From: Cyanophora paradoxa CCMP329
Lineage: Eukaryota > Plantae > Glaucophyta
Reading direction: 5' to 3'
Assembly (NCBI GenBank): GCA_004431415.1
Contig: QPMI01000134.1
Coordinates: 1-64,000 of the forward strand
DNA: 64,000 nt
Both the position numbers and the translations under genes were made by a program. This document shows, piece after piece, positions 26,197 through 51,807 of this stretch (its first letter is position 1; every line of letters starts with the position of its first letter). The notes below the pieces were generated by a model, which was not told the origin of the DNA, ran no database searches, and saw only the letters and a program-made list of their open reading frames with translations.

Positions 26197-27282
26197 ATGC
26201 CAGCCGGGAAGAGGTCTAGATCCCAGTTGGAGCCGTGCCACGTACGTCTGCCTAGATTTGCTTCCACTGTCTTCGTGGGCATAATCTCGAATTTTTGCAG
26301 TTGACTGCATGCGTGTGCACGTCTGGACACGTAAGCGATCTCGTGGACTGGCTACGTCGCAGTCGAACAATCGTCGTGGACGGCGGCGCTGCGTGGCAAG
26401 ATTGGCATGCAACGATAGTATCGCTCCTCAAGTCTATGGGCCGCATAGCTCCTTCACGTCTCGCGAAAATCATGATGCAGCCAAGGCCTGTGTGCCCTGG
26501 AAAGGACGCGCTTCGTGACGTGGCATGGAAGGTGGAGGTGTTGCGGTTCTTGCTCGTCGTGGACGAGTCATCCATCGATGATTTAGTCAAAGGGGCGATC
26601 GAGCAGTACATCATATACGAGGATGAGTTGCACGATGCAGACTGTTCGTTCAGAGCACAGAACGGTGATGTGATTGGTTGCCCTGTCTCGGGTGCGTCGG
26701 TTCCTGCTCTCTACTTTTAGGCCTATCTATTGCTGGTTTTGACGCCGATGTAGCGCCGGATTGCACTCTGGCATCGATGGCCTCTCCTGGCAGGGGGATG
26801 ATGACTGCTGGAATCTTCGATCGTCTTCTTCAGCAGCTGAGCGTTTTCATGAATGTGTTCCCCAAGTCGAAGCAGATTGTACACGAGGATAGCTCTGGCC
26901 GAATGACGGCCTCTGAGAAGACTGATGCAGAACTTCTGATTGACTCTGCCACGGAGCTCTTTGTGAATGTTAGGAATTCCCTAGGCGTGCTAGGCTGGCA
27001 TCTTGTTCATCTTACCAACATCGTTGCTGGGCACATCAAGGAAAGGTGTGCAATGCGTGGACGTGTAACCTTAGCTTTTGTAGTATGCTCACTGTTTTGT
27101 AACGAGCAGGAAGGAGGATTTGGATACTATTCTTCGCCGTACAGCTGATCTTGAGGCTCAGGTGTGTGTGTCTTATACATATGTGCTCCATGATTATGGA
27201 CTGACTACCTTAGTGCATGCAGGCGTCGCTTCTCCGAAAGAAGCTTGAAGCGCTTGAGAAGCAAGCTTGTGCTGGTGAATAG
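26197..27282 (+). CDS. Helentron cargo gene, unknown function, 5 exons, C-terminal coiled-coil
   Basis: MPAGKRSRSQLEPCH|LTACVCT..QNGDVI|GLSIAGF..AGHIKE|RKEDLDTILRRTADLEAQ|ASLLRKKLEALEKQACAGE*, joined in frame by canonical GT-AG introns. Confidence 0.65.
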
Positions 27283-28781: not shown

Positions 28782-29640
28782 GGAATTGAGAATGCGCGTG
28801 GAGTCCCAATTGCGAAGCGCGGAAGGGTGGAGCAAGCGCGGAAGAGGACGACCAGCCGGTCGCATACAGAACAGACAGTCCCAACGCCCAAGGATTGGCT
28901 AACGGTGAAAGCCGCCGGATTACGTTTGATCATGTGTTCTGAGCCTTGCGTTCTGATATGATACACGCAGGACGTTCACGTTGCCTGCACGACATCTGGT
29001 GCTCTCAAGTCCAAGAAGTACAATCACTTTCGTCAGCGTGTGATGCTCGTCTACCCGATGCACGAGCAGCTGTTCCTGCAGTCTCTACGCAGCATGAGCA
29101 CTCCAGAGAGAGCGGCGGACCTTATGTTGAATGGTGGTAGTGCTGTGTGCTTTTCGTGTCCTGTTACTACAGGGGACAACGTTGATCCCCGCGGATTTGG
29201 AGAGCATTTTTGCCTGATGTCCATAATGAAGGAGTTGAAGCAAATTCGCTGGTTCGATTCGAAAGGAGACGGTATGCCGGAAGAGCTTGATGTAGAGCTA
29301 CAGCGTCTTTTCCCAGATTATAGCTGCACTCTTGTAGTTCCACCTGGCTTCAAGCTGCAGACTGGAGTGATTAATTGCGCCGATTGGGTCTGTACGTGCT
29401 TTGAAGCTACGCTGGACGAGCTTGATAGTGGCATGAACTGGCCTGTTTGGCCTGCGGAAGTCGACTGGATTGCACTCGATATCTCAAACTCCAGCGTTGA
29501 GGAGATGACTAACGTTATGACGATATCAAAAACGAACCACACGTTCATCTCGCGCAAGCGCAAGACTTACATCGCTCTGATGGAGGCGCAACTGAGGAAT
29601 TCCAAGGACCAAGTTCCTGCGCTGGACTTTTCTGCATGTC
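28782..29640 (+). CDS. Helentron cargo: divergent Ulp1/SENP-like cysteine protease (gene ends uncertain)
   Basis: Splicing 28905-28970 yields PKDWLT|DVHV (the Ulp1 WLxD motif), then GEHFCL (His ~29205), IRWFDS (Asp ~29256) and LQTGVINCADWV (Gln, Cys ~29376). Confidence 0.75.
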
Positions 29641-31699
29641 CGCCCCGTTTATATCGATATATGCATACTGTCTTCCCACTCATTATCTGCTGGCCTCCTT
29701 GCGGCAGGTCTGATGCACTCCTCTATATTTCCGTCGGATTAAAATTACGCAAGCACAAGAGTTATGGCTGCGGCGAGTCCGTCCTGCATTTACGTGACAG
29801 TGATTATAGCCCAACATGATTTGTATTCTAGTAGGTGCTTTGATTCGAAGGCCAGTGCTGCGGTAGGCTGACCTCCGCCCAGTGTGAGTCGTGGCCCCAG
29901 CGGTGGACGCCCGCCGCCACTGATAGCTGGTGGCCAGCGTTAGCAGTGAGCTTCAAAGCCAGAAACTGCAACCTGCGTCCGTAGAGAGCACCAGGGTATG
30001 AAGGAGTCGATGTGCCACGGTGTTCTTCTTTAGAATGCCAGCGGCTCTCGCAGGACTTTGGCAGCTCAGCCCGGCGATGTACTGGTATAGTTCATCGAGA
30101 CTCGCCGCGGGCGCAGTGGTGGTGCACTGTCTGCAGCTTCTGTACTGCCAGTACTGGTGGATCAGACTCTGAGAGTGAGGGGCGCGTAGCGCAGAGCTTG
30201 GGCTGGGAGGCAGAGCGCAAAGTCACTTTTAATACGGAGAATTATAAGCACGCACTTCCGTTCGGATGGTTTCAGTCTCTAGGGTGGTGGTCGGTGAACC
30301 ACCTCCCGTCACTCTTTGATGCGGGGCGCGCCACACGCTGCGCGGGGGTAGTTCAGAAAGTGCGCGTTGATAGTTCTCATGTACGTTGTAGTGATGGTGT
30401 ACCGGAAGGTGCACCTTTCGTCGGTGAACAGCGAGGCACGCTGTCCGGCTGCCGATGATCCGCTGTCTGACTGTCGGGCATGCCTGAAGCGCCCGAAAGT
30501 GAGGTACTACGCCCGGATAGCGACGAGCCGAGCTGATCGGGGGGTGATGTGAGCTCATTGTTCTAGCTGTATTGCTAGCTTCCGTGCACGGGCGCACCTT
30601 CCACTGCGCATGGATTGTGTTGGACGCGCTCACATGGCGTGCTGTCTTCTTCCGCGCGTTGTGAGTGGGGGCGGACGTCGACTGCATCGCATGCGGAAGC
30701 GCCTGCGGAAGCGCCTGCGCTGCTGATCTAAGCAGGCTTCGCACGCTTGTAGTGGATATGTGCTTTAGCGGGCGAGACTCCTGGCTTTTGGTCATATTAC
30801 GCTGTACCCCTGTCGAACTGCATCCCTGCGCCAGTCGGACATCGCCGTCGGTCGATTGGCGCAGTGCATGTGGATGCTGAAATGGCTTGTACTTGTCTGA
30901 CTGAGTATGGCGTACAGTATGCGTGCCCCCAGATCGTGATGTTCGATTCGTGCGGCCGGATGGAATTGGTGTTGTCGTACCCCGGTACAAGATCGCCCCC
31001 GCGCCAGTCGGACGTCGACGGTGCTCGACTGGTGCGGTCACTGAGGTGGGCTAACGTTTTGTTTGCCTTCGGAGAGTGATCTTCAGCGCGGACGACTCTG
31101 CTGGAGTTTCAAGTGCACTGTACCCGTGTATGTGTTCATCCCGGTTACTGGTTGTATGTAGTACCCCACATGAGGGCAGCCGCATCTCGCGGCTGCTCGT
31201 CCTCAAGTGAGGATTTGCTTTTACGTTATTGGTTGTTCGAGTAACGCGCAGATTGAACGAAGGATGTGACCTGTCTGTGCTGCGTCGAGCGTGGTGCCTG
31301 TAACGGGTGCGTGTAGAGTTCTCCATTCCGCGCTTACTTCGATTGATTAGTTACTACCAGGCGATACGCGTGGACACGCCGCGTGGATGCGCACCGCTCG
31401 GCCACCTGGTGACCGCTGCCGTCTGCGTCGTGGCGGACGCATCGGTCCTCGGTCGCGGTCGCCGCTCCGATCGTGTAGGAGGCGTGGGGTGATGGCGGGA
31501 CTCGCTGTCTTCACCGGGTCCGTACCTTTCTCTCGAGATAGCTGGCTGAGTACTGTTCGAGCTGATGCACGATTGCGCTGTACGTGCAGATTGTACGGGT
31601 GAAGTAGCTGTCCACGTGACGTACCGGCGCTTGTCGCCTGGAGGCTGGTACGAGTCTTCGTATGTTGCAACCGCGCTTTCGTTCTTCCTGGTAACGCCG

Positions 31700-32880
31700 T
31701 CGTGCTGTAGAGATGCGATGGAGTGCGGATTGCATCCCCAGTGTATATCCTCCCTGCTCTGCCCGGCACTGCTCCGCCCTGCCCCGTCCCGTCCCGAGGT
31801 TGATCGGAGGATTCATGTGCAGATGAGCACCCGGTCTACGGTTGTGATTCAGGTCAGCCCGGGCGCTATGGGTGCAAGGATGATTGGCCAAGCCCCAGTG
31901 TGCGCCCCTACCCGGCTTTTCTGTGGCCCTGTCGCTCGTGTCTTATGCGCTGCTCTCGCGCGCCCTCCCGCCGTTGCCCGCCAGAGCTTCGTCTCCCCCC
32001 AAACCCATTCCCATGTCACCCGTATCAGCGTCGTGCTGCCCTAGTGCCCCGCCGCTATCTATGGCCCCACCCATGCCGTCCATCTCAGCGCCCCATCACC
32101 CTAGTGCTCTGTTGATCTCTCGTGCGCAGCTATTGCCGCGTGTCCAACCTGGGCATGCGAATGTTTCAGTGCCTGGTGCATCCCCTTGGTGATGCCCCTC
32201 CCCTGTCGCTGCTCTTCCGCCATAGAGTCACTGCTATATCCCTTTCGCTGCTCTTCCGCCATAGAGTCACTGCTATATCCTTAGCCCTCCAGCGGCCCTC
32301 TAGCTGGTTCGGAGTCGCGTTGGCCCCGTAGAGTTGCAGTGGAGTATGTACTGCATCTCCATGTCATAGCCGCCATGACCCGCCGCGCCCCGCCCCTCCC
32401 TTCCCTGCCCTGCTGCGCGGCTGATTGGAGGACTCATGTGCAGATGAGCGCCCGGTCTACGGTCGTGCTTCAGATCAGTGCGGGCGCCAGGGATGCGCGG
32501 ATGACCGGGTAAGCCCCACTGTGCGCCTCTACCCGGCTGTGCTGTGATTCTCTGGCTCGTCTCTTCTGCGCTGCTCCCACGCGCCCGTCGTCCGAAGCCC
32601 CCCATAGCTTTTACGCCCCTCAGAGCCTTTTCCACGTCACCCGTATCAGCGCCCCGCTGCCCTACTGTCCCGGCGTTATCTATCACCCCACCTCCGCCGT
32701 TCTTCTTAGCGCCCCATGACCGTAGTGCTTTGCTGATCTTTCGTGCGCAGTGGTCGCGGCGTGTCGACCTTGGGTATGCGCATGCCCCAGTGTCTGGCTC
32801 CTGCCCCAGGTGATGCCCTCTCGACCTAGAGTCACGGCTATATCCTTCGCCCTCCAGTGGGTCCCTAGCGGGGTCGAAGT
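31700..32880. repeat. Two degenerate tandem units of ~620 bp with an internal ~39-bp tandem duplication (32201-32280)
   Basis: GGAGGA(T/C)TCATGTGCAGATGAGC(A/G)CCCGGTCTACGGT at ~31806 and ~32427, with collinear downstream similarity. Confidence 0.85.
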
Positions 32881-33959
32881 CGCGCCCCCCCCCCTCCCCC
32901 CTCCCCCCCCCCCCCCCCTTCCCCTGCACCTCTCCCGATCCGCCCTCAGGCCCGATCAGATGGCGCCCTAGATCTGGAGTGTAGCGCCCTCCGAGCCCGA
33001 GCAGATACTGCCATAGCATTCCTAGATTTGGTTCTAGCGCTTTTAGACCGAGCCCGTTGTGCATGTACGTATTACTGTGTGTGTATAAAGTTGAAGTGGA
33101 TGTTTATGGTGCGCCGAGTGCTGGCCGTGGACGGGGATGCAGGGTCCAGATCTAGACATCGACGAAGCTATAGATATGAACGCGGATGCGCCTATTGTGC
33201 AGTTGTCGAGGTTGCCGCCTGTTGGGGGCGCCGCCGCTCTTGCTGTATATGTATTCTGGCCAAGTGCCACTGTGGGACTGAAGCGACGACGTACCCGGGC
33301 ACACTTGCCAGCTCTGTCAACGTCGCAGCTGCCCGTCCTCAACCACGTGCCGACGCGCACAGTGCGGCTGCACGACGACTCCTCGTCCTCAAGCTCGAAG
33401 TGAGGCTATCGGAGCTGGAAGCCGGCGCGGCCGGCTGCAATCTGCTTCACGCCTCGGTTGCCTCCTGCTTCTGGAGCACTCGCCGCCGAGTGAGCTCGTA
33501 GTGCATCATGGATGGACATGAACCAGGTAAGCGGTCGCGGTGGGTGCGGTGGCTGCCGTCGCTTATGGTCTGGTTGCCGCGCGTGGCGGCTAGTCATTAT
33601 TTGACACTATCAGCGTTCTCCCGGGGCTCACGTCGTGCTGCACTCTTCCACTACGCGTATTGATCAGTCGCCATGCTCGCGCGATCCCGCAGGACACAGC
33701 GCGGGTAGTTCTGGGTCCGGACATGTGGGCGCGGTAGGAAACGGCTCGTCTGGACCAGGTGCATGTGAAGGTGGTGCTGAGCGCCTCTTGTAAGATTGCA
33801 TCTTATCCTGAACTCGCGCCCGGGTCGCGCCGTTGTCGCAGGGGGTGCAGCTGGAGAGTTGCCTCTAGCAGGAGCCGTGGATCCGGATGTGACACCGGCA
33901 AATGGCAAGTTGTCTCTTTTTCGTCTGTCTGCCTTAATCTTCACCCACACTCGTACATA

Positions 33960-35100
33960 TCCTGTCTAGCCCGCCTTGGAAGGGCCGCCAGTGGGGCATA
34001 TCGAGCTTATCTCATGCTGAATTGGGTGCTTCTGCGGCTCAGTTGGGGATGGCGGGGCTGCTGGGCCTTCAGTCCTATCTTCAGCAGGCCCTGGGGTCGC
34101 AGATCAGACACCAGGCATGTTCCATTATTCGTACATCGCCTCTCTAGCCAGCCGCGGAAGGGCCGCGATCAGACTGGCAATGCCGCGATGCAATTGTGTG
34201 TATCGTGCTGATGGCATACTGAACTGGGTGCTTATGCGGCTCAGCTGTTGAGGGTGGAGGCCCTGGTGCTTCAGTCCTGCTGGCAGGAGTTTCTCTGGTC
34301 GCAGGTCCGTCACAAGGCATGTTTCCTTACTTGTACTGTTGGGCTCGCTGCCGGGTTCTGCCTCGCGAGTACCGCTATCGAATTCCCCTGTACCACTACC
34401 GTTCATCGGCCTATTCCACTGTCGCTTTCCCTGCAAAGCTTGAATTCCCTTCTGTATTAGTATCGTCCCCTCTTATGTCCAGCAGCGGCGGGCCCAGTAC
34501 ATGTCATTGCGCATCTTATGCTCCCTTCTCGTTTGCCTCCCTCTACGTTCGCGCACTAGTGCTCTCGCGAGTTTGCTGCCTATCATGAATGCACTAGTGC
34601 TCTTGCCGCCCTCTACGTTCGCGCACTAGGGCTCTTGCGCTGAAATGTGCCCTTCGTCCGCTCAGTCGGTGATGGTGGCGCGGCGGGTGCATCAGTCCTG
34701 CCCGAAGCAGTACCCACCATCCCAGTTGCGGCAGCAGGCACGTCCCCTGTTTTCAATGATGCTGCTCGTTGTCGTTCACTGCTGAATGGTTACCGGTGCC
34801 TTCTGCGCCTCTTTAATTATCGTTGCCGCTCTAGTGCTTAGATGAGTTACCTGCACGGTTTAAAATTCATCCCGTCTCGTTAATGTCCACTCCCCTCGTA
34901 GGTCTTATGTTGTGTACCAGTGCTCATTGCGACTTTTAGTACTCCGCGTTGTATCACCGGGCCGCCTCTTTAGCCTGCCCCGGAAGGGCCGTGTATAAAT
35001 TGGCCATGCCGCGACACATCGGTACATATTGTTTTCATGTCGTTCTAAACTGTGTTTCCCGGCCGCACAGTTGCTGGTGGAGGAGTTGCTGCTACATCAG
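33960..35100. repeat. Three degenerate copies of a ~200-bp module plus a short duplicated motif (34537-34640)
   Basis: TAGCC..C..GGAAGGGCCG at ~33967, ~34145 and ~34970; CTGAA.TGGGTGCTT.TGCGGCTCAG at ~34017 and ~34219. Confidence 0.7.
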
Positions 35101-35415
35101 CCCCGCCGTCAGGAGCCGCCGTGGTCCCAGATGAGCTGGCAGGTACGTTTACTTGCACTTTTTCTCGTGCGGCCCGTCGCTGTTCTCTGCTTCCCGGTGG
35201 TCTTTTTTCTAGTTATTACCCAACCGGTATTCGTTGTGCATTGACTATGGGTTTACCGCATACATTGCATGTTTTAAACTTATTCCCTGGCATTTCTCCC
35301 CCTTATTAGCTGCTTAGCGCCATTGCAGCCCCTTCGCCCCTGTCATTGCCCCCCCCTATTTTTAGGCGTTGCCGGCCCTTGGCCTGCGATTGAATTGAGT
35401 ACTGACCATACGCAG

Positions 35416-38400
35416 TTGCACGAAAGGTGTTTGAGGATGCGTTAAGGGCGCGGGTTCGTCGCGCAGATGAGTTGGACCCCGGCAATACTGGTAAATTGAT
35501 ATGTAACCATTGATATGTGTATTGTCACTTTATTGATCTTTGTGAATTACAGTTTTGCTCCGGCGACCACTGGCAATCGTAGCCTTTCTCGTCTCATTTA
35601 CGGGTCTCGAACTGCTTGAGACGTTCGCCGCGATACATTCCGCCTCTTTCTTCGAAGCGTCACGATCCAAGATGCTGGCGGTAGAGAAGTACGGTGGTAT
35701 GCGACACGCGTTCGAGTCAGTGAAGGAGAATCGAGCGTACTACTATGAGGATGTCAAGGAACGTTACTTTTCGACAGGGCTGGATCCCCGCATGTTCCAT
35801 CGTGGCCGCGTACACTTCGTCCAGGAGGTGACTCGTCAAGTGGAACGGATATGTGACCTGCCGCATGATGAAGCATTGCGTGAACTCTCCAAGATGAAGG
35901 TCACAGGCAATGCCTACTTCCGTAACGTTGAGAGCATGTGGCAGTCATCAGTCAGGAATTTGGAATTCGAGAATGCCTATCGCAGCGTCGTGAAGTCGCA
36001 CACTGCGACGGTGGAATGCTGTATCAGGTCGTTTGGGACTCTCGACGAGGCGGGTGCCAACAAATTCGACCGCTCTTACACTGCACTGGTTGATGCATGT
36101 GGCAACATGCGGACCACTATTGAGTTACACGCTTCGTACAATTCGTTGCTTGTGTCATCTCATCCGTGCCGCGACGTTCAGCACCTTGAGTCTCTGAAAA
36201 TACCGAAACTGACATCTACGCTGCAATCCCGACGCAAGCGCGTGGTGTCTGCATCTACACATCTAGACGAGTATGTCTCCAACGCAACGGACTACATTGT
36301 GAAGTGCAAGAACTGTCTTATCTCTACTTGTAAATCTGAAATACGTCGTCTGCGTGACTTACACCCTGGTGCATGAGCGGTGTATTACTGTATATGATAT
36401 TGTCACTGAATATTACGTTTTTTCGTGCAGATGGCGCGTCCAATGCAGATCATTGGGTAGTAACCCGACTTTCTTCGATTGTGTCATCGTTGGTATTTGT
36501 TCTGGTGTTGTTCTTAGTGCTTTTACATTATGTTAACATGATTGTCGAGCAGGAGAATTCGAACTGGATTGAGTTCCAGATTTCGCCTATTCATTCTGGA
36601 ACTGAATCGAAACCTGCTGCTTCTGTTGTACCTCGTCCGTCATCAGGTTTGCATCTTTGTATATCAATGCCCGCAAGGTCAGACGAGGATAATTACGGTC
36701 TTCATCTCTCGTCTTACTATGTCATCATTTTTATATGTGATTCTGAATCAGTGACAGATTCTCAGCCGGCTCCGGAGATTGTTCCGGCCTTATCTGCAGG
36801 TGTGCTGTATATCTTCCGCGATTGTATGATTTTGTGTTTTGGACGGTTACCAGCGAATGTACTGTCCTTTCCCCGCGCAGGTCCATCATCAGCTGCAGTG
36901 GCTGCGGCAAGCGCCACGTCGGCAAGTGGAATAACTGCAGATCATACTGCTGTGCTGGGTGAAAATAATTCCTCGCACGTAGAATGTCTGTTCGCATTAA
37001 CTATGATGTTCATTGCAGCGGCTCCAGCAGACGCATCTGGACATCTTGCAGTATCTGCCGGTCATCTATCGGATGGGTTAGGCGTGCCGTTATCTTCGCT
37101 CATGTCTTGCCCGAAGTCTGCCACTGAGTCTGCATGCAGCATCAGCTGTGCCATTGGTGAACGTGTCATGTGCGCTTTATATTATATGTATTAACGCACG
37201 GCAATTTACCATGGCCATTACAATTTAACTGATTGCGGCGGCCGTGCAAGCTGCTTTACCTGCCGCAGTGAGCTCAGGCGGGGAAGGGGGCGAACCTTCC
37301 GGATCAACTGGGCAGCCACGACATGGTGTAGGTGGTTCGTTTATCTGTGGTTATTCATTGATGGGTAAGCAGCATGTAATGTAAACCTGCCGGCAGCCGC
37401 AGTCGTGCATGCGATGACCGTGACAGGTGTGCAATCTACTTCCTGAATAAACGTATCGTACGCTATCGGTTTCCTTATGATTTCACTGACTGCGGCGGTA
37501 GCACCGGCTGCTATACCTGCTGCAGAGATTGCAGGCGGGGAAGTGGGAGAATCCTCCGGATCCGGTTTGCAGGAACGGAATGATGCCGGTGGTTCGTTTA
37601 GTTGCCGCAGGCGTCGCGTGTAATTAAAGAACAACATAGTAATCTTATTGATTGGTTTTCAATTTATCGCGACTTGCAATTATGGGATGCAGATACGACG
37701 GGTGCTTGCGATGGAGCGGGAGGCGGGCCGCCGGCCAAACGCTCAAGGTCGTACAGCTATGATCGGAAGGATAAAAAGAAAGATAAGAAGAAGACGGATC
37801 TGGGCGATTCGGAGACGAAGGATGATGGACAGTCGAGCTCAAACGTTGGTACGGCAGACATGCACGCAGATTCTCAATCGGTGAGTATATCTGTGCAAGC
37901 TATCCATCTTTGCACCGTGTGTAAAATGTCACGCATTTTACGTAGAGCGAGCCGCCACTCTTGGCATCTTCGGTGCCTGTTGCGCGAAAAGCTGAACCAA
38001 TGGATATCGTCGTGTGTACCTTTAATATTTGGCACCCGTGTTTGTATTGAAACATCAGCAGGCTCTGGATTCTGAACAGTTGTTGGACCCGGAGATTTGT
38101 ACAGTTGGAGATCCAGAGCCAGGTATGAGATATTTCTGCATCTCATGTTTCTGGTCTGTGTCAAATGATTTATTCCACGTAGATGATGTGAATATTGCAC
38201 GGGAGACTAATGAGAGCCGGGCGGCGCGAATCTGGTTTGAACAGCCCAACCGTATTCGGCGGCTGGTGGAGATCGTGTCCTCGAAATTGAATGTGGCTTC
38301 CAGTCATCCAGAATCTCACGGTGAACCTGATGCCGGAAGTATAACCGAAGACGTCGATGATCATCTCCTCGATGAGTTATTCGATCCAGCTCGTAGTCCA

Positions 38401-39500
38401 GCTCTGGCCTCGCTGGCATCTGCGTCGGCATCTTCCGCATCATCGTCTCCGTCTTCGGCGGTCGTCACCGGCGCAGATGCCTCGGTGGCATCTGTGTCAT
38501 CATCGGATGCATCGTCGTCTCCGTCCTCTGTGGTCGTCAATGCGACGAAATCGCACTCATTGTTCTTCAGCATTGGGATTCACCTCTCGAATATTATGCC
38601 GGCCTATATGCGGCGGCATGGCCGTTCACTTTTATCGAAACGCACCCGTGTAATTGAACGGAAGAGGATGGAAGGCTTTTTCATGGTATGTTCGATAGTA
38701 TATTTCGCTAGACTCAACCTGCTGAGGTGGAGACTGGGTGAGTGCTGTTTATCTGATGCTGGGAACGTCATCTTTTCCTTTTTGAACTCATTTGCAGGTG
38801 AGAAGGTGTATGATCCTGTGCCGAAGTTTGTGAAGAGCAAGGAAGAACGCAGGGGGCCGCGTGGAGAGTTCGCCGGAAGTATCGATTCTCTCGCCGAGCT
38901 TTCAAATCAGTGGGGCAAATGGTTTTCGGAAGTCGTCGCGCCTCATATACAGGCACCGCTTGCCCATCTTCTGGCTGGTTCTGCGTCCCTGTATGATAAG
39001 AACACTGTCGAGAAATTGAATAAACTTCTTGATATCACCCCGGGCACTCGTGATAAGACTCGACTGTTGTACAGGGTGCGAGTGCGATGAGTTCATGTCG
39101 TACCAAGTGCTCACATTGTGCTGGTTGCAGGTTGGACACTTGTTGGCTATTCGGCCAAATATGGTCCAGTCTCTGCTGGCCGCCCCACTGGCTATTGACA
39201 TTGGACTCTTCGAGATATTGGATTTTCTGAACCATCTTGTCAAGCTCGAGTCCGTCGACGTCATCCTTCCCGCTATTGCTGAGGCTGATCCTGCTGTCAT
39301 GCCTGTATTTGAGAGGGTAGAGGGGGAAGAATTGGCTTTCTTGATTGGGCGTGTGAAGCCCGGCCTGCGTCTTTTCTAGATAATTGTAGGTAGCAAGCTC
39401 ACGTGCTCACATGTGCGAGTAGCGGCAGCTCTCGGATCGTTAGTTTTTCACCCTCCGAGCTGCATTCCCCCCTGTCCAACCCGGCAGAGCATACCTTCCT
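35416..39500 (+). CDS. Large multi-exon Helentron cargo gene (or genes) of unknown function
   Basis: Long non-GC-biased ORFs 35555-36376 and 38029-39090 linked by a run of small Ser/Ala/Pro-rich exons with GT-AG borders; Lys-rich NLS-like segment PPAKRSRS..KDKKKDKKK. Confidence 0.55.
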
Positions 39501-40354
39501 ATTTTTCGGATTCCATTCCCCTTTTGTCCGTGGTTGTTGTTTTGCAATGTAAACTTTGGCTGCTTGCTTGATGAACTTGTGCAGTGCACTGCACATGGAG
39601 TCACCTCTGCCTTCCTGCGTCTTCCTCTCGCATCGCATCGCAGTGCACTGCCGTTCTAGTGCCGCGTCGTTCTCCCGCTCTCCTCGCCAGTTCTGACATG
39701 GTACAAGCTGCACGAACCATGCACCAAGTGACCGGGTGCACGCCTCCTCCTACTTTCTTCTGGTTGTTGCCCCTGCTCCAGCTGCTGCGCTGTCGGCGTC
39801 AGCGCCAGCGGGCATCGCGCCCGACGCAGTCGTGCGCTCTTCTTGTCTTCCCCCGCCCCTCACCGGTGCCGACTGACCGCCCCAGGCGCCCCCGCCGGGC
39901 CACAGGAGGCGCGCGACTTGTTGCAGGTGCTCGAGTCGCGGTTCTCGCCCGTTGCAGCCCTCCCCTTCTCGTGGGGCGCCTGCCGTGAGTTCCGCCCCGC
40001 CCCCGCCTTTTTCCACCGGCCCCTGCGCGATTATTGTTTCGTTTCTGCCGCCATCCTTCTCAGCGCCCCGCCACCCCTCTCAGCGCCGCGCCGTCCGTCG
40101 CCCTAGTGTCCCGCCGCTTCCTCGTGCGCGGTACCTCCACTTTCAGTGCCCCGCCCCGCTCTCGTTCCGTCACCCTCCGCGTCCACCCCGCCCTCGCCCG
40201 CCCCCCAGCTGCCGATCGATAGATCCCATGTATGATAGGATGGGAGTACGTCTGCAATCTATGCTGTAAAATGGGCGTGTGATGATATTGTCATATTAGA
40301 CAAGGGTTCTCGTGGTGATGTAATTAGCTATGTAGTATGCATCGTGACTAACCT

Positions 40355-42033
40355 GCATGTTCTGGTTAGGCTGGCTTAACCGCAACAATTCTGGATTATA
40401 CTGGCCGTCGACCCCGTGATTCGTCGTGTGGGTTGAATTATTAAACGCCTTGACTCTGCGGGATGCGTTAATATTTAGTTCATATTATAAGGAGTGTATA
40501 GGATGTGCACTCACACGATCAAGGAATTGTCGACTATGCCGACTTCTGACGCGCACTGGGTGCCTGTAATGGCGGTGTCGTCTAGGTAAAATTGCACATC
40601 GTTCGTTCCGAGGTGGAAACGCTCGCGCGCTGTGCGGAACAGGTCTTCAAAAGGACGTGAGTAGTCGAGCCGAACGTTGACGATCTGGTTACTATGCTGT
40701 ATCCGGACTGTCACAGTAGGCTTCTTTTCAATATTCCGTAACCTATCTTAATGTCAGGTTCAATGGATCGACCGTTCGGGATATTGATGAACATGACATT
40801 ACGCACTCTATTATTTCATCTTCACGATATCCGACATCAGATGGACTCTCGTGCACTTCCAACCCGGTCCCTCCCAGTGTGAAGTGTGCCTTACTCGGAT
40901 CGACTTTGAAGAACTCGCATGCTTTTCCAAATGCATCTTGGAATGGTACCGTAGGGTCTGTGTATAATTTGAATATACCCTCGTCATTGAGGAAGTGTAC
41001 TGAAATCGCTATGTTCATGGCATCCTGTACGATCCCTGTCATATTACCAGTGTTCGGGTGAGTTTAAGTATCACGCACATGTACATGAACTGAGTCACGT
41101 GTCTCTCGTCGAACCGGATGCCAGTGTCCGTGCCAATCGACATGGACCTCACTCACGTCCGGATTCGGGCACTGCCCTACGTTTAGGAAACACCAACTTC
41201 GCCAGCACACTGACTTAATCGAACCCCGTTTAGGATCGATAAGAAGTGTTCGTCAAGTCGAAGTTTGTTAGGGTATGCGTATGCGTTGCATCCATAGATA
41301 GGGCATAACCTACGTGTATATCAGGTCTGAATTTCCAACAATTGCGGGGATGAACAGTTAATGTTGAGGCACCACACGCTCCGGTCGACCCATTTCTTGA
41401 TTCCTTGTCTGTAATGAGCCTCTGCACATCTCCGGATATGCGATTGTCCGTCAAAGCACTGCGAGTTTGATTATATAAGTGTACGCCCAACTATATGTAG
41501 TAAGTATTGATCACCTGAGTGTGATTACACGCCGCTGTTCTCATTGGCAGCTTGATGCGTCTCCGGGATATCGCGTCTTTCAAATCGAAGATGAGCCGTG
41601 AATCGCCATCCGTTGATGCATCGGCCGGCGAGAATTGGAACCGTTTCTGATGTTTGACCAGGCACTGATGTGTCTGCTTTCTGGTCGTGGTGATTTCGAA
41701 CTCTCTCGGGCTGGTTAGGTCTTCTCCTTCGTCTGAGCTCCAACACACCGGATACTTCCCGGTCCTTGCCTCCTCCATCGCTGTCATCATGAACGCATTC
41801 AGGTGTGTGCTAATCAACTGATCGCCATTTCGTATTTGCGTACCGTGACGTTGTCCAACGTGCCATGCAATGCAGTTGATGGTGTCGGCGGCGATTTCAA
41901 GTGCGATAGAACCGTCTCGTGCTTGGTGCAGAATATCAATGGACAACCGCCCCATCGATTGTGGGCAGGTCTTTCGCGCTGGTTGTCCAGCTTTGCCTCG
42001 CCATCCGTCTGAAGTCGACTTCGTACTTGACAT
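40355..42033 (-). CDS. Helentron cargo: Siz/PIAS-type SP-RING (zf-MIZ) SUMO E3 ligase-like protein fused to two SUMO-like (Rad60-SLD-type) domains
   Basis: LIFDLKDAISRRRIKLPMRTAACNHTQ|CFDG..VWCLNINC..SDLIY|..DEHFLSILN|QCPNPDVSEVHVDWHGHWHP| then SLD1 (IAISVHF..KLYTDPTVPFQDAFGKACEFFKVDPSKAHFTLGGTGLEVHESPSDVGYREDEIIE|) and SLD2 (VTVRIQ..VRLDYSRPFEDLFRTARERFHLGTNDVQFYLDDTAITGTQCASEVGIVDNSLIV). The model needs a 1-nt correction in a C-run (~41348) and one acceptor reads CG (~41259). Confidence 0.78.
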
Positions 42034-42961
42034 CTTCTTAGATCTGTGATCGATCGCCGAAGTCGCCAATTGCAAGAATACGGATGCTGTGTAAGTTCTC
42101 GCGCGCTCTATGTCGTTGGAATATCGTTAATACCAGCTAGTACCGCCGTACTATACGCGTACCCTGGATGATGTCATACCTCCTCTCCCTGCTAGTCAGC
42201 GCTTTTCACCGTGGCCATGGTTCTCTGATAGGCGGGGCGGGCAGGCTCGTTTGAAATTGACGTAGGTCGGGTCGCGGTGCGCACTATGCGTACCGCTATC
42301 CGAAGTAGAATTAGACGGTTATTCACGTCGATCGCTACGTGCAGCTACGTACGTCGATCTGTTCGCAGCTACGTATACGTACACAGATCTGTTCATTCAA
42401 TCGGTCATCCCGCTTTCGGGTGGTCAGTTCCGCTGGATCTGATGGATCCGGACCAACGTGTTTGCTGTCACTGTATGCCGTATCTTTTAATGTCTTTGTC
42501 ATTCTCGGTCAGTGGTGGCATTACTCACACTGCTACTTGCACGCGGTTCGCATGCTTGTTTGATGCTGACGTCTCGGTTTGCCGTCTATTTCTGAGACTT
42601 GTATCAGTCGTCATCAGCGTGGGACCTGGAGTGGGAAACCAACAGCTGCCGTAAAGAATGCGATTGAAGATTACATGCTCGATATGTACTCTACTCGCCG
42701 ATGGTGTGCTTGCTGCATGGGCTTGTGTCATGTGGCCGACATGTACAAGTAAATGTAGCAACTGCCTCCTGTGCCCAGTTCATGGCGACATCTGTAGTTC
42801 ACTCCCTTTATGGTTCCTCGTCCCACATGCCCGTCATCTATGATCACACGTGATGCAGCGCCCTGCTCTTCTCATCATATTCATATTTTCTTGATTGTGC
42901 TGATATGGTGTGATGGAAATAAAAACTAGATGTTGTTCTTTTGATAATCTGTTACATATCA

Positions 42962-43830
42962 CTATGGCGCTAGCCTCGTATGCCCGATAGACGTATTGCC
43001 GCGAACAGAACGGGTGGGAATGACCTCGCGCAAATCTCGAGTGAAGTGTGACCCTGGCAGAATGCGGAAATACTTGTGGGAGTTGCAGTCGTCCGATATC
43101 TCACATAGCACTGTCGACGATGTGGGCATTGCGATGATATCCCAGTCGTCTCCTTCTGACGTCTTGGGTTCGGGGAATATCAGACTGAAGCACTCCCACG
43201 TGCCACCATGCAGCGGTCGAACGACGCGGTACGTCATACCGGAGCTCCAGAGTACGAAGGCAGTACCGTTCTCCTGGAAAATAATTGAGCGATCTCCGCT
43301 GATAACCTCCAAGAAAATGCGCTCAGTGTCGCTTGTTATCGCGATTATTGCAATCGCCCCGTCGAAGACTGCTACGTGTGCTCCTGCACTGAATCGAGTC
43401 TCCAATTCTCCACGGTACTGTTGCAAGTCCGCATCGTGTCGAGCGCTCCACATGATACTGCCGGAGGAGTTGCGATGCCTGAACTCGCTTACTGTCATCT
43501 CAACGATATGCCCGTCCGGGAACGTGTGCGAATGCACGATTTCATCTTGGAGAATTCCGTCGGGCGAATGTGTCTGCGGCACTGTTGGTTTTTTCAAATC
43601 TCCACTGATTGAAGAGTGCTAGCGCGGCGAACCTCGGTTTCTGAGCGTTGCGCGATCGGTCTCTCTAACGTAGGGCGTGCCGACTGGGTCGATGGCGTCT
43701 CCGTAGCTTGCACTGACGTGGCTCGAGCCACTGACGATCGAGTGTCAATGCTTCGACTGCTCTCCGTCGGATGTGGTCCGGCTTCTACCACGCGTGGTCG
43801 CTTATGTGCATTCGCGGCCCTCTGCATTTG
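42962..43830 (-). CDS. Helentron cargo: hypothetical beta-rich protein (211-aa ORF, probably continuous with the upstream ORF across a frameshift at ~43597)
   Basis: Intronless ORF with globular composition in non-GC-biased sequence; no family recognised. Confidence 0.5.
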
Positions 43831-44959
43831 TATGCTCCTGCTGTACACCTCGACGTGCTGACCTGTTTTCGCTGGTTCGGAAATCACTGTACCCGTGTTC
43901 CTGTACGTTGCAGTGAGTACCAGAGTAGGTCCTTGAACCGACGGTTTTGGTCAGTTCTGTGCCAGTCGTATGCAATCAAGAGTGCGTGTTTCATGAAGTA
44001 GCGAGAATCGTATCGGTGCGTGCTTTCGTCTGATCTGTACGCCCCTTGTGGACTCATCCCTGTGCGCTCCGCTCTTCGCTTTCCCCAACCTAGATCGCTC
44101 CTTACCCGGTGCGCACGCAGGTGGCGGAGTAGAGATCTTGCTGTCGCTGCCAGTTCCGTCCGATAGCCGGTAGTTTCAGTCGCCATCTCGATCCCCGTGC
44201 GTGCAATATGCTACGTGCATTACCCTGCAAGTTCTAGTTGATATCGTATCACTTTCTCGCAGCACGCGCTACTGCATATTATATTCCGGGCTCTCTTCGA
44301 CATTCTTCGCTCGCGTATACACAATGTCGAATTGTCATGGCGGCGTACACTTTTTTTATCGCCCTCCTGATGTGGTGCGTGCTACTGAGTTCGCGATTTT
44401 TCCGAGTTCTCGCGTAAGGCGGTATTTCAGATTGAACTGCCCCCTTGGGGTGTTCCACCTTCAGCCGTATCGAGTCTTCTCAGTCACGTGTGTCTGCACT
44501 TGCGATCGTAAAGTTATTCTACTTATTAACTTCCTCTCTGATGGGTGATCGTATGTAGAGCGCTGCCAATCCTTGGAATGCATCAAGTATTCGCAGCTCT
44601 CAATTTCTTATTGCAACCCCTAGTGTACCTGGCGCCGTGAGCGACCAATTACTCATTTCCCATGGTACGACTGATATTCACTCGGTGTGTTTAGACCCCT
44701 ATTTTTACATCGGGTGCTTCCCGCGCTGCTTATCCACCTACAGTGCGTCTTCCTTGGTCTGTACTGTATTTCGACTGCCTCGTACTAATTTCGTGGCGCT
44801 CAGCTTCCAGTTTATCCCCCTATTTCTGCAAGTAATTACACTGCGGCACAAACGTCGTGGTGGCCGCATCTGTTGCCTTTGTCGGCCCTCATTCCAAATA
44901 CATCGGTATGTGTACGTGTGTACATTATTTCGCTAAATCTTTGTGATTGCATTTATTCG

Positions 44960-47900
44960 TGTAACCGGGTCGCAGTGTCCTTATCGCTGTGCAATTGTTC
45001 CCTCCTGCTCTGCGTCTTTCCTTACCGAGCGAGATTGGCGGGTGCACATGGCAGCTGCGCACGATACGACCCAGGATAATATATACCCGTGTGGGTATTG
45101 TAGTGCTGTGCTGTCCGATCGTTCCAGTTGGGACGCGCATCGTAGTTCTGTGCACCGCGTAGTAAGAGCCCGGGTTCGCAGGGAGCGCAGTACGTACATT
45201 GTTGTATTCCTTCCATCTGGGTCTGCGAATTTACCCTCACGTCGGTAATGCAGGTCCCACGTATTTTCCCCGACGACGTAGTCGTTTGAATCAGAACGCG
45301 AAGCAATGTATCCGAGATTCTGATGCAGGTACGTACTATATCATGCATGTATTGTGAAAGTACGTCAGTTTGGCACGTCTTAACAATTTCCAGCTCGGCA
45401 CGCAAATGATCCTAATTGGCCGTCATCGCATGCGAAGAGTAGAAATCGGAGTTATTACACCCAACGTACTCGTCTGTTGGAAAGGAACACGAATTTTGAA
45501 TCCGTACTCGAAAAGTGCGTTGTACGTTGCCTGCTCTTGTGCTTGCCTTCTTACGTTGCGTCAGTTATGAACCGGCGCAATTTTGGCATGATATTTCTGA
45601 TCCTGCCTTAAAGGAAGCAGCTAAAGTCTACTTCCTGAAGTTATTCTGCATCCGGCGGGGGTGCAGTTGTTGTACAGAATCAAGGCGGGCTGATAAACTG
45701 CATCCAGTGTCGTGCAAGTGTCTCTCGTCTAGGGACGGCGCCTCTACGATGCCACATCAAGCGGGCTGCTCGTGTATTACGACGGATGTGTGTTGTCATG
45801 CCTGCTCTGTCATGCGCATTCATGGAATATCCAGTGACCACGCTCGGGTGGAACTGTGCACCCGATGTAATTCCTTTAAATGCTCGCCGTCGCGGACATT
45901 CTGCCCCTTTTCAAGTCTGGTGCGATTTTGTACAACTGCGTTTATGCGTATCGGTTGATCATAGCTTGCTCATAGAATCGACTTCATTGCGTTGAAGTGG
46001 ACGAACGTATCCGGAACTTGCTGTCCGATCTGACGTACCCCGAGTTGTTAATGTGCCAAAGAGTGAATAACTATCAGGTGATTGCTCGCGCCCTTGTTAT
46101 TACGGTACCCTTTCGACATATCTGCCGTATGACGCTAGTACTCAGCTAATTCATGTACGAGGACCGAAGGGGAAGAATGGGCGGCGCATCGGTGGCGGGC
46201 AACTTGGATCGCAGGGCCGTGTTATATTCGTCCCTTGCAACCCTATTAATAATATCAAATCTATATTCCCGCTCCCACCGAGAGGCAAAGTGTGTCTGGT
46301 AAACCAACGGAAACCTAAAGGTGGCGAGACATGGTACAATCGTGTCAGGCTCGACAAATGCTTCGAGGTGCTGGAGTGCTTGCGCGATACCACGAAACAT
46401 ATCTACTATCAGAATATCCAGCTACGTGATCAGAACGACCCCGAATTGTTGGCTGAAATTGACAAGTGGAATGCCGGAACTACTGATAGTGTCATCAATC
46501 CACGTGACGCTGATGACTCGGACAGCGATACTTCCGACGTTGCTGCATCTGATTCTACGCCTATGAATCGTCCAATCTGTCCTTCAGTCGCCGTTAATTT
46601 GAAAGGGACTTCTCTCAGCACGCTCCCCGTGAATTCTGGCCGAATTATACGAGCCCATTCGCCGGAAACTGACGTGTGTTCGTTTCTGTCGGTATATCCT
46701 ACTGGTGTGTTTCCCGTCCGGGAATTGTACGCCTTTCAGCCGATCGAATTTGCGCAGGCACGCATGGCTTACACGATCCGGCGAGGCCTATATCGCTCAC
46801 CGCCCGCGAATTCTTCTCCCATCGATGCCTTGCGACATCTTCTGCGCCATTTCAGCGCGACCCGGCGGCCCTTCTGAACTCAATTTCCATCATATTGGAT
46901 GATGACGCATGGCGTGGTTTTAATTTTGTGAGGGATCATATTGTGAATGCAGCATCTCTTGAAAACCAGGATACGCATGGAGTGGTACCGAATGCTAATA
47001 TGACAGTTGCGGACGCCTTGAACCTGGTGAACAGTACAGTTGAGGATCACTCGCTTGATGCTTTAACCATACGTACAAGGTGCTACCGTACAATGACACG
47101 TAATGTGATTCCGATCCGAAATATTCATCCTCCCGCGCCTTCTGAAATTTCTCGCTCGTGCCCAGGTTCGAGGAACGGCTGCTTACTGGACAAATGCGCG
47201 AAATAAACTACACAGCATGTTCACGACCATTGGTTTCCCTCACATCTACATGACACTATCGAGCGATGACCTGCACTGGCCTGATCTACTTCGGGCAATC
47301 GACCCTGTCAAATTCCAGTCCAGCACCGCCGTATCGGAATTTACAAAAAATCGTGACGACGTTGTGAAACTGCTGAATGACAACCCGGGGATTGTTGCTG
47401 AGCACTTCGATGAACGAGTTCGCGCCATGTTGGAGTTGTTTCAGTCCGAAGGTGGCGAGAGCCTTTTTGGTTGGCCAGTCGTAGATTTTTTTGTTCGGTG
47501 CGCTTTGGAATTCATGTACGTGTATTTCGCGTTGTCTCATACGTCTCCGAAGGTATGAGGTTCAGAGTCGCGGGTCGTTGCATGCTCATCTAGTCATCTG
47601 GTTAGGTGAACGTACACGGGACGGAGTATCTACCCCTCCCCCCAATTTGGATCCGGCGGATCCCGCCTTCAATGCAGAACAAGTTTGTGCATGGCTGGAT
47701 ACGATCGTCAAAACGGAAGTGCGTTGTAGCTCATGTCATTGGAGTCGTGTTTGCAATCTACCTCTAATCTAGGCTACAGCAACCTCGCACTGAAGGCCCT
47801 TTTGCACAATCGTGGGCAACAGAGCGATTGCAGACATATGTTGCTCGGTTCAACCGGCACAAGCACTCGCATACTTGTCGGATTGATCCATCGGCGAAGT

Positions 47901-48920
47901 ACAGACACCGTCGCCAACGGAAACTGGCCGTCGTCGACGAGGACGCTGAGCTTCATGATCCTCTACCAGATACGGCCCGCAACTCCGTTCTCGAGGACCA
48001 GTTGTCTGCAATGGAGAAGGCTGCTCCTTCGGAACATGTAGCCCGTTCAGCCCGGATTGCGAGATTCATGGCCGAATACAAGGAGAGGTGTAAATGTCGA
48101 TTTGGGTTCCCCCATGTGTTTGCGGCAAAGACGCACCTTCGGAGTTCTCACGAGGAGCGCTTCATGTGTCGTGGGGACAGGGAAGTAATTTTTAAACGCA
48201 CCACACAAGACGACAGATACACGAACAACTTCCATGATATAATAATCCAGCTATGGCAAGCCAATATGGATATTCAAGTGGTCACTAACCCGTACAAGAT
48301 TGCAGCGTACATCTTGGGGTATATGACTAAAGATGAGACAGAGGAGATGAAGGCGGTTGAGAGCGTGCTGTCTGATTTGCCTGAGGAGGCTTCGACCAAC
48401 CAAATCCTCTTGAAGGTTCGGTTTCCTTTTACATGACCGGATTAATTGTGATTGGTTTGTAATCGCTGCGCCGCTCTCCTAGATGCGGAACGCAATGCTG
48501 GGATGTCGTACAATGTCCAAGCAAGAAGCGGGTCTATATTGCCTAGGTGGGTGCATTCGTTTTGTCGCCGGAGTTTGCGTGATGAATACGCACATGTGCC
48601 GCTGTGATCGTGCCTGCTCTCATGTATTCATGTGCATGCTGCAGGTCTACCATTGTTTTATTCATCACGAACATCCTGTTCAGTTGGGGCGTATCTTCCA
48701 GGGAAACGCACGAAGCACCTACGTAAGAAACGGGACCTCGAGTTCCGTGTGCAGCGCAATCCAAATGATGAAGATGCATGGGCGGATGATCAAGTTGATT
48801 ATTATACTGCTCGTACTAAGGACCCTGCTGGTACGACATTCACTTTCTCGTTCTCGACGTAAATAATCTGTGCGTATACGTGCAGGCTCGGCACCTGTTT
48901 TCGAGTCCCTAACATTATCT
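44960..48920 (+). CDS. Helitron/Helentron Rep (HUH/Y2 endonuclease) with two N-terminal C2H2 zinc fingers, spliced, truncated before the PIF1 helicase
   Basis: C..C..H..H x2 (44985-45155); LTYPELLM..GQLGSQGRVIFVP; VRGTAAYW; FPHIYMTLSSDDLHWPDL; NPGIVAEHFDERV; YEVQSRGSLHAHLVIW (HUH at 47581); HKHSHTC; CRFGFP; WQANMDIQ..AYILGYMTK (Y2). Possible frameshift near 46840. Confidence 0.93.
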
Positions 48921-51807
48921 TCCCTTTTACCCGAGCTCCATCCCTATATATATAACATTTTAATTGTTTCATTATCTTCCCTTTTACTTAATTTGTCAAT
49001 TCTTCGTACATCTCTATCACGCATTTGGTATACAAAACTTAATTTATACCCATCCTGCCGTAGTGCGTGTCCCCATTTCAGACCAGAGGCTGCACTGCCC
49101 CCGGGGCAGGACTGTTTTTTTCGACTGCTTCTCCAACACTCGCAGCGATCCCACGCGGCAGGGCTAGGAGGCAGCGAGCCGGGTACAGCAACCGCAGTTG
49201 CGACGCTGGGCTCACGCCATGCAAAGCAAAGTCAAGCGTGCAAATCATTTGCGAGCTCAGTGCGCAAACCACGGCACACGCACACTGCCAGAGCCTGCGC
49301 CATAGTACACATGAGTTCACAGCAATCAAACCGGCGATCGCAATTAACGGTCCGCGGATAGCCGGGGCTGCAAGGTCCTAGAGGCCGATCGCGATCGCGA
49401 CTCATGCATATGACGCAATTCTAATTAAATAATTCGATGTGCAAAACCGGATCGCCGAGTCATCTAATTCGAATGAATCATATATATAGGCAGTTTACTA
49501 TTAATTTAGCGCTAGCATCACGAGTTCTTAAAATCCGACGCATAATAATCGCACACGCTCGGCTAATATATCGCATGTGCATGTAAAATCGAATCGCCGC
49601 ATCAGATCATGATCATGATCATAATTATAAATAGCCTCCTGTCCCATTTAGAGCATTCTAGCTTTAAATCATTAATCGAATCTAAAGATCGCATGATCAT
49701 GATCGAAGTCAGTTCTCACGCGTGAATCACGGTATAGCTACTATGGCAAGGATCTGGACGGTCCAGACCCCGCTGTCGGAGCATCTTTGATGTAGCTACC
49801 GGGCATCACCGCTGAACCGTTGAACATGCCTGTGAAGCCCAGCTGCAGCCGGCCGTAGAGAGTCTGTCGAGCCTGAGCGTCCGGCTTGAGCCCTATAGCT
49901 AGTACGTAGCGCCCAACTGAAGCCCGTTCAAGCCCGAGTGTAGCTCTGCCCAGCTCAAGCTTGACGGCAAGTTAGCAGTACTACCGCCTGGCGTCAGCGG
50001 TTACAAGTTAGAGTCCAGACTTGAGCTCTAGCCAAGTCCAGTCTGCATCCAAGGCTCCGAGCTTGAGGCACTAGTACTGGCACACACAAGTCAGCGCTAG
50101 CGCATGAGTTGCGTGTCCCTTACAGTGACCGGCGTTAACGTTAGCAGCGTAGCATTAGTAGCTCAGCGGCTAGTCGTCTTCAGGCAGCGCGGCTCCGCTG
50201 GCCATGGGCTAGGGGCTGACGGGTACAGCTCCGTCCACGATGTGATCCGTCCGAGCGCTAGTTAAAGGGATGATCCGCTGAGGCATTAACATTGCTGCTT
50301 GAGCCAGGACGTAGACCGGGGCAGTTGCACGATCCACGAGAAGCCATAATTAATTATCGAATACACACTACACCCGCCGGCGCCGCCTCCACGCCCACGG
50401 GCCGCGCGCCGCCGGGGCGCACGCGCGGCGAGGGCGGCGCCCTGGGGCGGCGGGGCGGCGGAGGGGAGTGGCGGCGGGCGGCCGCGCGGCGCTGCGGGGC
50501 CCGAGCTGCGGGGCGGCCGCCGGGGCCCGGGGGAGCTTTCCGTGCTCCCGCAGGCGCCGGTGCAGAGGAGAGCGGACTCAGGGCGCGAGGGCCGCACGCA
50601 GAGGCCGGCCGCCGCCTCACAGCGGAGCGGCGCCCCGCGCCGGTCCGGCGCGCTGCCGCGCCGGCTCCGTCGCACTCGCGGCGGTTACTAACTGCAAACG
50701 GCCGTTAGGCTAACTGCCGCGCAGCGGAGGGGGCGGCGCTTCGGGGCTTCGGGGCGCACGCTGCTCCTCGCTGGCGACCGGCGCGGGGCGGCCTCCGCGC
50801 CGCGAACCGCGTCACGGGCAGTGCCGAGCCGTGCTCCACGGGCTTCGTGCTCCGCGCCCCACTCGCGGCGACTCCGCCCTTCGCCCGCCAGTCCATTCAA
50901 TCGCGGCGCGGCCATCCGGGGCGACCTGCCGCGGGCGTGCGTCAGCTTCGACTTCGCCGCATGCAAATGCACGACGCTGTGCGAACCAATGCCCTCCGCC
51001 AAGGCCGCCGCCGCCGCGCCTCCGCCGAGCTCGCGACGACCGCGAGCGGCCATTGCGGCGCTTCCGAGGGAGGCTGATCGTGCTCCAGATGCGTGGAGGA
51101 GCGCATTCTGCTGGCCAGCTGCTCGCCCGCACGCTGTGGAGCGAGATCTCGTCACGATTTCTGTGCCGGCTTGGGGTACAGCGATCGCCCGCTTCGCCAC
51201 CTTCGCTCCTCGGGCTTCGATGCGCCTTGCGGCGCGGCGCCGGTATACGTGCGTTCCAACTCTATCGACGGCATGTGCTGGTCTAACACGCGCCGCTCGC
51301 AGCCTTGCGATCTTGTGCGACTCGGCAATGCGGTCGATTGCAGGGATCAGCGCGCGCGCAGGCGCGCGGCTCGATGCGAGTGCGATGCGATCCCGGCGGC
51401 GAGCGGATCCAGGTACGCCGCTCGGCCGCGCACGGACGCGCCTAGGCCTATCCTGCGCGAGTCGCAGGGGGCGCGCGCGCGGACGATGCGGTCCTGCGGG
51501 GCCTCTGCCCGAGCCTGCCGCCTCGGCTCCGGACGAGGCGGCCGGCGTCGCGCCCGGGCGCACGCCGACAGACGTCCGCCTCGAGCGCCGCCCCGCGGGC
51601 CCCTCGGACCCGCCGGTCGCCCCGCGCGAGAGGCGCCCCCGCAGCGCCGCGCGCCGCGCCTCCGCGCGCCCCTCGAGCTCGGCGGCGGGCGGCGGCGACT
51701 CCTCCTCCTCCCTCCCCGCGCGCCCCGCCCCGCCCCGCCCCCGCAGCTTGGCTTACTGAGTCTTTGGCCTTGGCTCTCTGGCTGTTTGCTCTCCGCCCCG
51801 GCTCGCC

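Follow-up and report, generated by a model that had tools for sequence, protein, structure and literature searches.

A spliced and transcribed gene within a Helitron2-type transposon of Cyanophora paradoxa joins an SP-RING to two SUMO-like domains

Known designs of SUMO E3 ligases are few. Free SUMO, Esc2 acting in trans and engineered fusion proteins have each been shown to activate the SUMO E2 Ubc9 through its back. An E3 ligase fused to SUMO-like domains (SLDs) in nature would be a direct test of whether evolution takes this backside shortcut and of which SLD residues count. A minus-strand locus in the 64-kb stretch of Cyanophora paradoxa DNA analysed here (the window), in which exons for an SP-RING lie beside exons for two SLDs, raised the question of whether one intact gene (here the fusion gene) encodes all three domains, and what its product might do.

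The fusion gene is intact, spliced and transcribed

Run contigs were aligned to positions 39300-43800, X17 and X19 being probable RNA runs from different studies and X1 and X5 DNA controls. Seven GT-AG introns of 53-64 nt each were seen as joints in the RNA-run contigs, and three of the seven joints were common to both studies. The joints occurred in X17 and X19 only, and because X1 and X5 were without any joint, X17 and X19, whose labels are guessed, were taken as RNA runs. With the seven introns removed, the minus strand contains an open frame of 441 codons from the ATG at 42033 to the stop at 40298-40296, organised as follows.

41844..42033, minus strand: exon 1 (coding part), residues 1-64, N-terminal region; RNA contigs reach 42126/42152, splice 41844 to 41780 in two studies
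41781-41843, minus strand: intron 1, RNA-run joint in both studies
41515..41780, minus strand: exon 2, residues 64-152, N-terminal half of the SP-RING with D132, I134 and the ligands C148 and H150; zf-MIZ and zf-Nse matches
41459-41514, minus strand: intron 2, splitting CNHTQ from CFD, RNA-run joint
41373..41458, minus strand: exon 3, residues 153-181, SP-RING segment with the CFD motif and the long helix region; X17 contig 5 joints on both sides, translation
41310-41372, minus strand: intron 3, RNA-run joint
41225..41309, minus strand: exon 4, residues 181-209, W-x-C183-x4-C188 and post-RING motif L-x-L-D-x-x-F-L-x-I-L; RNA joints, translation
41172-41224, minus strand: intron 4, RNA-run joint
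41079..41171, minus strand: exon 5, residues 210-240, linker and a strand-turn motif resembling the SP-CTD (DV-x-EV-x-V ... G-x-W-x-P); RNA joints, motif by eye
41025-41078, minus strand: intron 5, RNA-run joint
40807..41024, minus strand: exon 6, residues 241-313, SLD1; protein matches, fold model, alignment with SLD2
40743-40806, minus strand: intron 6, between SLD1 and SLD2, RNA-run joint
40515..40742, minus strand: exon 7, residues 313-389, SLD2; Rad60-SLD and NIP45 SLD2 matches
40456-40514, minus strand: intron 7, RNA-run joint in both studies
40296..40455, minus strand: exon 8, residues 389-441 followed by the stop, C-terminal tail that lacks di-Gly; spliced from 40515 to 40455 in both studies

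Random seven-intron models built on the same DNA (n = 3621) never reached 400 codons (maximum, 351), and the fusion gene showed no letter difference and no insertion or deletion in any run. Contig 5 of X17, which is a short-read contig and not one molecule, has 691 nt, to which its aligned pieces (30+88+83+94+219+177) sum exactly, and it spans from 41544, with the C148 and H150 codons included, to 40564 within SLD2, crossing five introns. This single contig links the RING exon to SLD2, as expected if the SP-RING and SLD exons lie on one transcript. The initial annotation had also proposed that an intron splits the SP-RING signature (CNHTQ/CFD) and that another joins the two SUMO-fold segments in frame, and both were recovered as RNA-run joints, at 41459-41514 and 40743-40806, respectively. 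These two introns of its gene model were correct, but there are five more, and the stop lies at 40298-40296 instead of 40355; an intron at 40352 or a gene end at 40355 was not supported, as an X19 contig is unspliced across 40312-40455. Two lesions suspected at ~41348 and ~41259 disappeared, the former position falling within intron 3 and the latter within exon 4, in frame, since both had arisen from an incomplete splice model. The open 441-codon frame and the RNA-supported introns thus rule out that the gene is a pseudogene. Taken together, these results indicate that the fusion gene is intact, spliced and transcribed, and that its SP-RING and two SLDs share one frame.

Head to head with the fusion gene, a spliced plus-strand transcript without a convincing long frame was observed at 42223-42788 (intron 42546-42607), and a bidirectional promoter is suggested near 42150-42200, between the two.

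The SP-RING and the SUMO-like domains

Searches with the spliced model used one exon at a time, and no single exon reaches the curated cut-offs. Exon 2 alone matched Pfam zf-MIZ (positions 6-25, E 9e-4) with 19.5 bits, under the curated cut-off of 33.5 because the intron splits the domain; it also matched zf-Nse (E 0.017), and its nearest clusters with a family in the Atlas were zf-MIZ, with weak scores. The signature P-x-R...C-x-H-x-QCFD is present, together with all four ligands of a single-zinc domain (C148, H150, C183 and C188). The spacing of I134, C148 and H150 equals that of I186, C200 and H202 in Nse2, in which we take C200 to be a zinc ligand, the C183-x4-C188 gap is that of the Nse2-type pair C221/C226, and I134, in the first loop, would be the E2-contact isoleucine, at the Nse2 I186 position. 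In agreement with this assignment, an SP-RING binds one zinc (PMC12751080), and in Nse2 the zinc ligands include His202, Cys221 and Cys226 and Ile186 touches Ubc9 (PMC8636563). The aspartate D132, previously read as a substitution of the first zinc ligand, occupies the first Cys position, which is not a ligand in a one-zinc SP-RING, and the Nse2 ligand spacing likewise rules out that a ligand has been lost there. The gap from H150 to C183 has 33 residues vs 19 in Nse2, that is, 14 more, and the predicted domain is a diverged RING.

The QCFD signature and the post-RING motifs are Siz/PIAS-like by eye only. The exon 4 and exon 5 motifs, searched separately, gave no database match, and a PDB sequence search with each of exons 2, 4, 5 and 6 found nothing. 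Exon 1 had no Pfam match, and neither SAP nor PINIT was detected in exons 1-2, where 130 residues precede the RING; single-sequence prediction of the N-terminal fold was uninformative (pLDDT 35), and a word search with the N-terminal piece and SLD2, which is length-limited and blind to 441-residue relatives, returned no match.

The SLDs lie directly C-terminal of the SP-CTD-like segment, SLD1 beginning ~15 residues past the Trp of this segment, and this linker is presumably close in length to that of the engineered Siz1-SUMO fusion (by Siz1 numbering). SLD2 (exon 7) matched Pfam Rad60-SLD weakly (E 0.033), and NIP45 SLD2 structures were among its best PDB matches (E 0.06, 64 residues gap-free). 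SLD1 (exon 6) had no Pfam match and just two matches among 1.84 billion proteins, both of them poly-Rad60-SLD proteins, and the structural matches of its low-confidence model (pLDDT 54) were almost all beta-grasp folds. The two SLDs are 25% identical to each other in a gap-free alignment (E 7e-8). These lines of evidence, separately weak, agree, and both SLDs are predicted beta-grasp domains homologous to each other. Among Logan contigs of other organisms, two proteins of 2263 and 2899 residues (P0001 and P0002) carry many Rad60-SLD repeats, and one of them ends in HMG boxes.

A ligase for ubiquitin or another ubiquitin-like modifier, in which the SLDs would be generic ubiquitin-like domains, could be considered, as RBD, PB1, Ufm1 and many other beta-grasp folds fit the SLD1 model about equally well; the sequence matches are nevertheless to zf-MIZ/zf-Nse and Rad60-SLD, not to a two-zinc RING or ubiquitin, and make this reading very improbable.

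SUMO contacts the back of Ubc9 via Asp68 and Glu90 (PMC8636563), and in Esc2 residues D447/D449 are needed. In the SLD2 alignment, D367 (at the SUMO Asp68 position) and D384 are kept, and S386, at the Esc2 D449 position, and V389, for Glu90, replace the second acidic pair; in SLD1, G291 replaces Asp68 and the second acidic patch (E308, E310 and E313) is kept. Each SLD therefore appears to retain part of the Ubc9-backside acidic surface and neither the full set. As noted initially, neither SLD ends in di-Gly, the sole GG lying inside SLD1. A profile search driven by another organism's SLDs served only to place alignment columns; by this placement, two lysines beside the SUMO2 SIM groove correspond to Asp in SLD1 and SLD2 alike, which weakens the earlier suggestion of a decoy for SIM readers.

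The tandem SLDs of UAF1 are a di-SUMO mimic. The SLD pair of an active ligase might similarly be an adaptor for substrates or partners rather than a Ubc9 cofactor, a reading in line with SLDs that lie ~8 residues apart, as in a SUMO chain, and that each keep the backside residues in part. Canonical acidic SIMs, however, should bind poorly where the basic groove residues of SUMO2 are Asp in both SLDs, and SLD2 retains the backside Asp; we regard such an adaptor as unlikely.

The Helitron2-type carrier and its cargo

The surroundings of the fusion gene comprise the following features.

25287..49114, plus strand: Helitron2/HLE2-type (Helentron) element, 23.8 kb, carrying the fusion gene; repeats, hairpin, T-T insertion
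28962..29816, plus strand: cargo frame whose His-Asp-Gln-Cys pattern follows the Ulp1/C48 order; by motif alone
44937..48860, plus strand: Helitron Rep, split by introns, with C2H2 fingers, a Helitron_like_N match and the HUH and tyrosine motifs; Helitron_like_N E 2.6e-14, motif scan
24960..50372, no strand assigned: outer insertion around the Helitron, with TGT...ACA at its ends and CCCG duplicated at the target (4 nt); by comparison with the empty paralogous site near 7734

In the Helitron element, subterminal inverted repeats of 13 nt lie at 25287 and 49080, an inner repeat at 25323 and a 3' hairpin at 49095-49109; the insertion is between T and T. The 13-nt repeats are confined to the element ends, other tiles of the window giving at most 10 nt, and the pattern matches the definition of Helitron2/HLE2 (PMC11417382). 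The GC content is 53% in the island holding the fusion gene vs 72% in the host flanks. The fusion gene is thus cargo of a Helitron2-type transposon in Cyanophora paradoxa. No Walker A or helicase motif was found in the six frames of the element, in which an intron could split one, and the element is probably non-autonomous. A Rep frameshift near 46.85 kb was considered and dropped, as canonical introns of usual size can join the frames. The Rep ends ~250 nt before the 3' end of the element with no helicase after it, an arrangement that fits either a non-autonomous copy or a Rep-only design.

Without the Helitron, the outer insertion has ~1.6 kb (24960-25286 plus 49115-50372). No long terminal repeat was found in the outer element (24960-50372), which may be a solo LTR or a Ginger-like non-autonomous element split by the Helitron. 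The host flanks (1-15400, 24082-24943 and 50373-58250) consist of a multi-kb unit repeated in tandem, with 83-98% identity between copies, and were the source of the empty-site comparison.

The Ulp1-like frame had no Pfam or PDB match. Its N-terminal part shares 89% identity with a Cyanophora paradoxa gene model, which belongs to a cluster of six members on five contigs, and no contigs encoding this sister gene were found; as judged from this match and its cluster, the Helitron cargo is partly multi-copy. Two further cargo genes were observed. One, at 42962-43900 on the minus strand, is spliced (intron 43574-43632) and transcribed, without a Pfam match and with a sister copy ~86% identical elsewhere in the genome. 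The other, at ~36300-39560 on the plus strand, converges on the fusion gene and is represented by 3.2-kb RNA contigs in both studies; the pieces of it that were tested had no family match. In addition, a 621-nt tandem duplication occupies 31707-32822; it contains short GC-rich modules, which are found again at 39750-40200, just past the 3' end of the fusion gene, as well as in other contigs of the genome.

The DNA-run contigs compared contained no copy of the fusion gene at 85% identity or above, and no paralogue of any of its exons was found within the window. Exon-wise searches of run contigs, 1.84 billion proteins, and metagenome or viral contigs returned no second instance of the SP-RING plus SLD architecture. 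A single copy at that threshold, in an element of a kind that shuffles captured exons, would suit a recent chance chimera of two adjacent Helitron-family cargo genes, transcribed and with no selected joint function. Yet the seven introns are cleanly spliced with one frame kept, the 441 codons carry no lesion, and the SLD1 linker is presumably near the engineered Siz1-SUMO fusion in length. A chance chimera is improbable.

A possible SUMO ligase with its own backside cofactor

The back of Ubc9 is not covered by SP-RING ligases, which usually dock a second SUMO at this site via a SIM downstream of the RING (PMC12751080). When a non-conjugatable SUMO was added to the C terminus of Nse2, the discharge rate was raised strongly (PMC8636563), and the Siz1 complex structure (PDB 5JNE, chain 5jne_E) was built with a SUMO fusion (PMC8636563); the work of Streich and Lima and of Yunus and Lima is taken here as cited in PMC8636563, PMC12751080 and PMC8064691. 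Esc2 SLD2 takes the place of SUMO and stimulates Nse2 in trans (PMC13645794, PMC7849368). The earlier suggestion that the fusion could hold Ubc9 at two surfaces thus has direct precedents. The SLDs are placed like the backside SIM of SP-RING ligases and like the SUMO added to the Siz1 and Nse2 constructs, and this placement supports the reading that the transposon may encode, in the fusion protein, a self-contained SUMO E3 ligase with a built-in cofactor for the back of Ubc9. Based on sequence and on analogy with these systems, we give this reading a probability of about 0.45. It is favoured by the 441-codon frame, the zinc ligands and E2-contact Ile at Nse2 spacing, the NIP45-like SLD2 with its backside Asp and the second acidic patch of SLD1, and it is weakened by the incomplete backside set in both SLDs, the diverged RING, the lack of detected SAP/PINIT and the single copy found.

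As a ligase of this kind, the zinc SP-RING would bind the front of the host Ubc9, the SP-CTD strand would keep the donor SUMO closed, and a tethered SLD would occupy the back of Ubc9, a site that canonical Siz/PIAS and Nse2 ligases fill, by way of their downstream SIM, with free SUMO or with the SLD2 of Esc2, Rad60 or NIP45. The SLD pair could then replace both SIM and cofactor and make the ligase independent of free SUMO and of a host cofactor. The most tentative step is that the element might use the ligase and its Ulp1-like neighbour for resetting SUMO, whether on the chromatin or the replication intermediates of the element itself or on silencing factors of the host.

The same two contacts could instead produce a Ubc9 sink, or dominant negative, whose RING and SLD bind the E2 with poor SUMO transfer and which lowers host SUMOylation alongside the Ulp1-like cargo as an anti-silencing device. 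Two-surface binding would give such a sink its avidity, the RING is diverged, no substrate module was recognised in the protein, and a SUMO-pathway gene found on a transposon usually encodes a Ulp1 protease. Against it, the zinc ligands, the E2-contact Ile and the SP-CTD-like motif are all kept, beyond what a sink needs, and a SUMO-like domain tethered to an SP-RING ligase activates in published tests (PMC8636563), so that a sink seems unlikely too. As to the ligase with a built-in cofactor, the wider proposal that the Helitrons of Cyanophora bring a SUMO writer of their own, namely an active SP-RING ligase with an internalised backside cofactor that needs neither free SUMO nor host Esc2/NIP45 and cooperates with element-borne Ulp1-like erasers in rewriting SUMO marks to counter host silencing, is rather doubtful.

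If true, this wider proposal would make the fusion protein the first one-chain E3-cofactor found in nature and the first SUMO ligase to be encoded by a transposon. SUMO proteases are known cargo of transposons, and no transposon-borne SP-RING or other SUMO ligase was found within the literature searched, nor was a natural SP-RING plus SLD protein. An intact and transcribed writer-type gene in a Helitron makes the idea of elements rewriting host SUMO chromatin marks testable. For the pairing of an SP-RING core with an SLD, yeast uses two separate proteins and biochemists have built fusions artificially.

The domain composition places the predicted protein outside Siz/PIAS proper, as no SAP/PINIT was detected, and outside the RENi family, as it has a RING. 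With Siz/PIAS ligases (Siz1, PIAS, plant SIZ1 and PIAL1/2) it shares an SP-RING with P-x-R...C-x-H-x-QCFD and, as judged by eye, a putative post-RING motif and SP-CTD-like strand, but its 130-residue N terminus is unrelated, its C-x4-C contrasts with their C-x2-C, its RING helix region is longer, two SLDs replace the downstream SIM, and the gene is transposon cargo. The C-x4-C SP-RING and an SLD as putative Ubc9-backside cofactor recall Nse2/Mms21 with Esc2 (PMC13645794, PMC7849368); in yeast, however, these are two proteins linked by a SIM, whereas the fusion is one chain in which no Smc5-binding helices were recognised.

Like the RENi proteins (Rad60, Esc2 and NIP45), it has tandem non-conjugatable SLDs near the C terminus, with the backside Asp kept in SLD2 and not in SLD1. 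RENi proteins lack a RING, and Esc2 is no ligase on its own, whereas here an SP-RING lies upstream of the SLDs, SLD2 is followed by a 52-residue tail instead of being C-terminal, and the Esc2 D449 position is Ser. The engineered Siz1-SUMO (PDB 5JNE) and Nse2-SUMO (PMC8636563) likewise combine an SP-RING ligase with a C-terminal non-conjugatable SUMO fold, but the present fusion, a putative ligase, is natural and has two diverged domains vs one SUMO. Finally, as a SUMO-pathway gene on a DNA transposon it resembles the Ulp1/OTU cargo of Helitrons, Mutator and Ginger, Ulp1 protease being the SUMO-pathway gene that transposons usually carry (PMC11417382, PMC2836005); those genes encode erasers, whereas the fusion gene would combine a writer-type domain with SUMO mimics.
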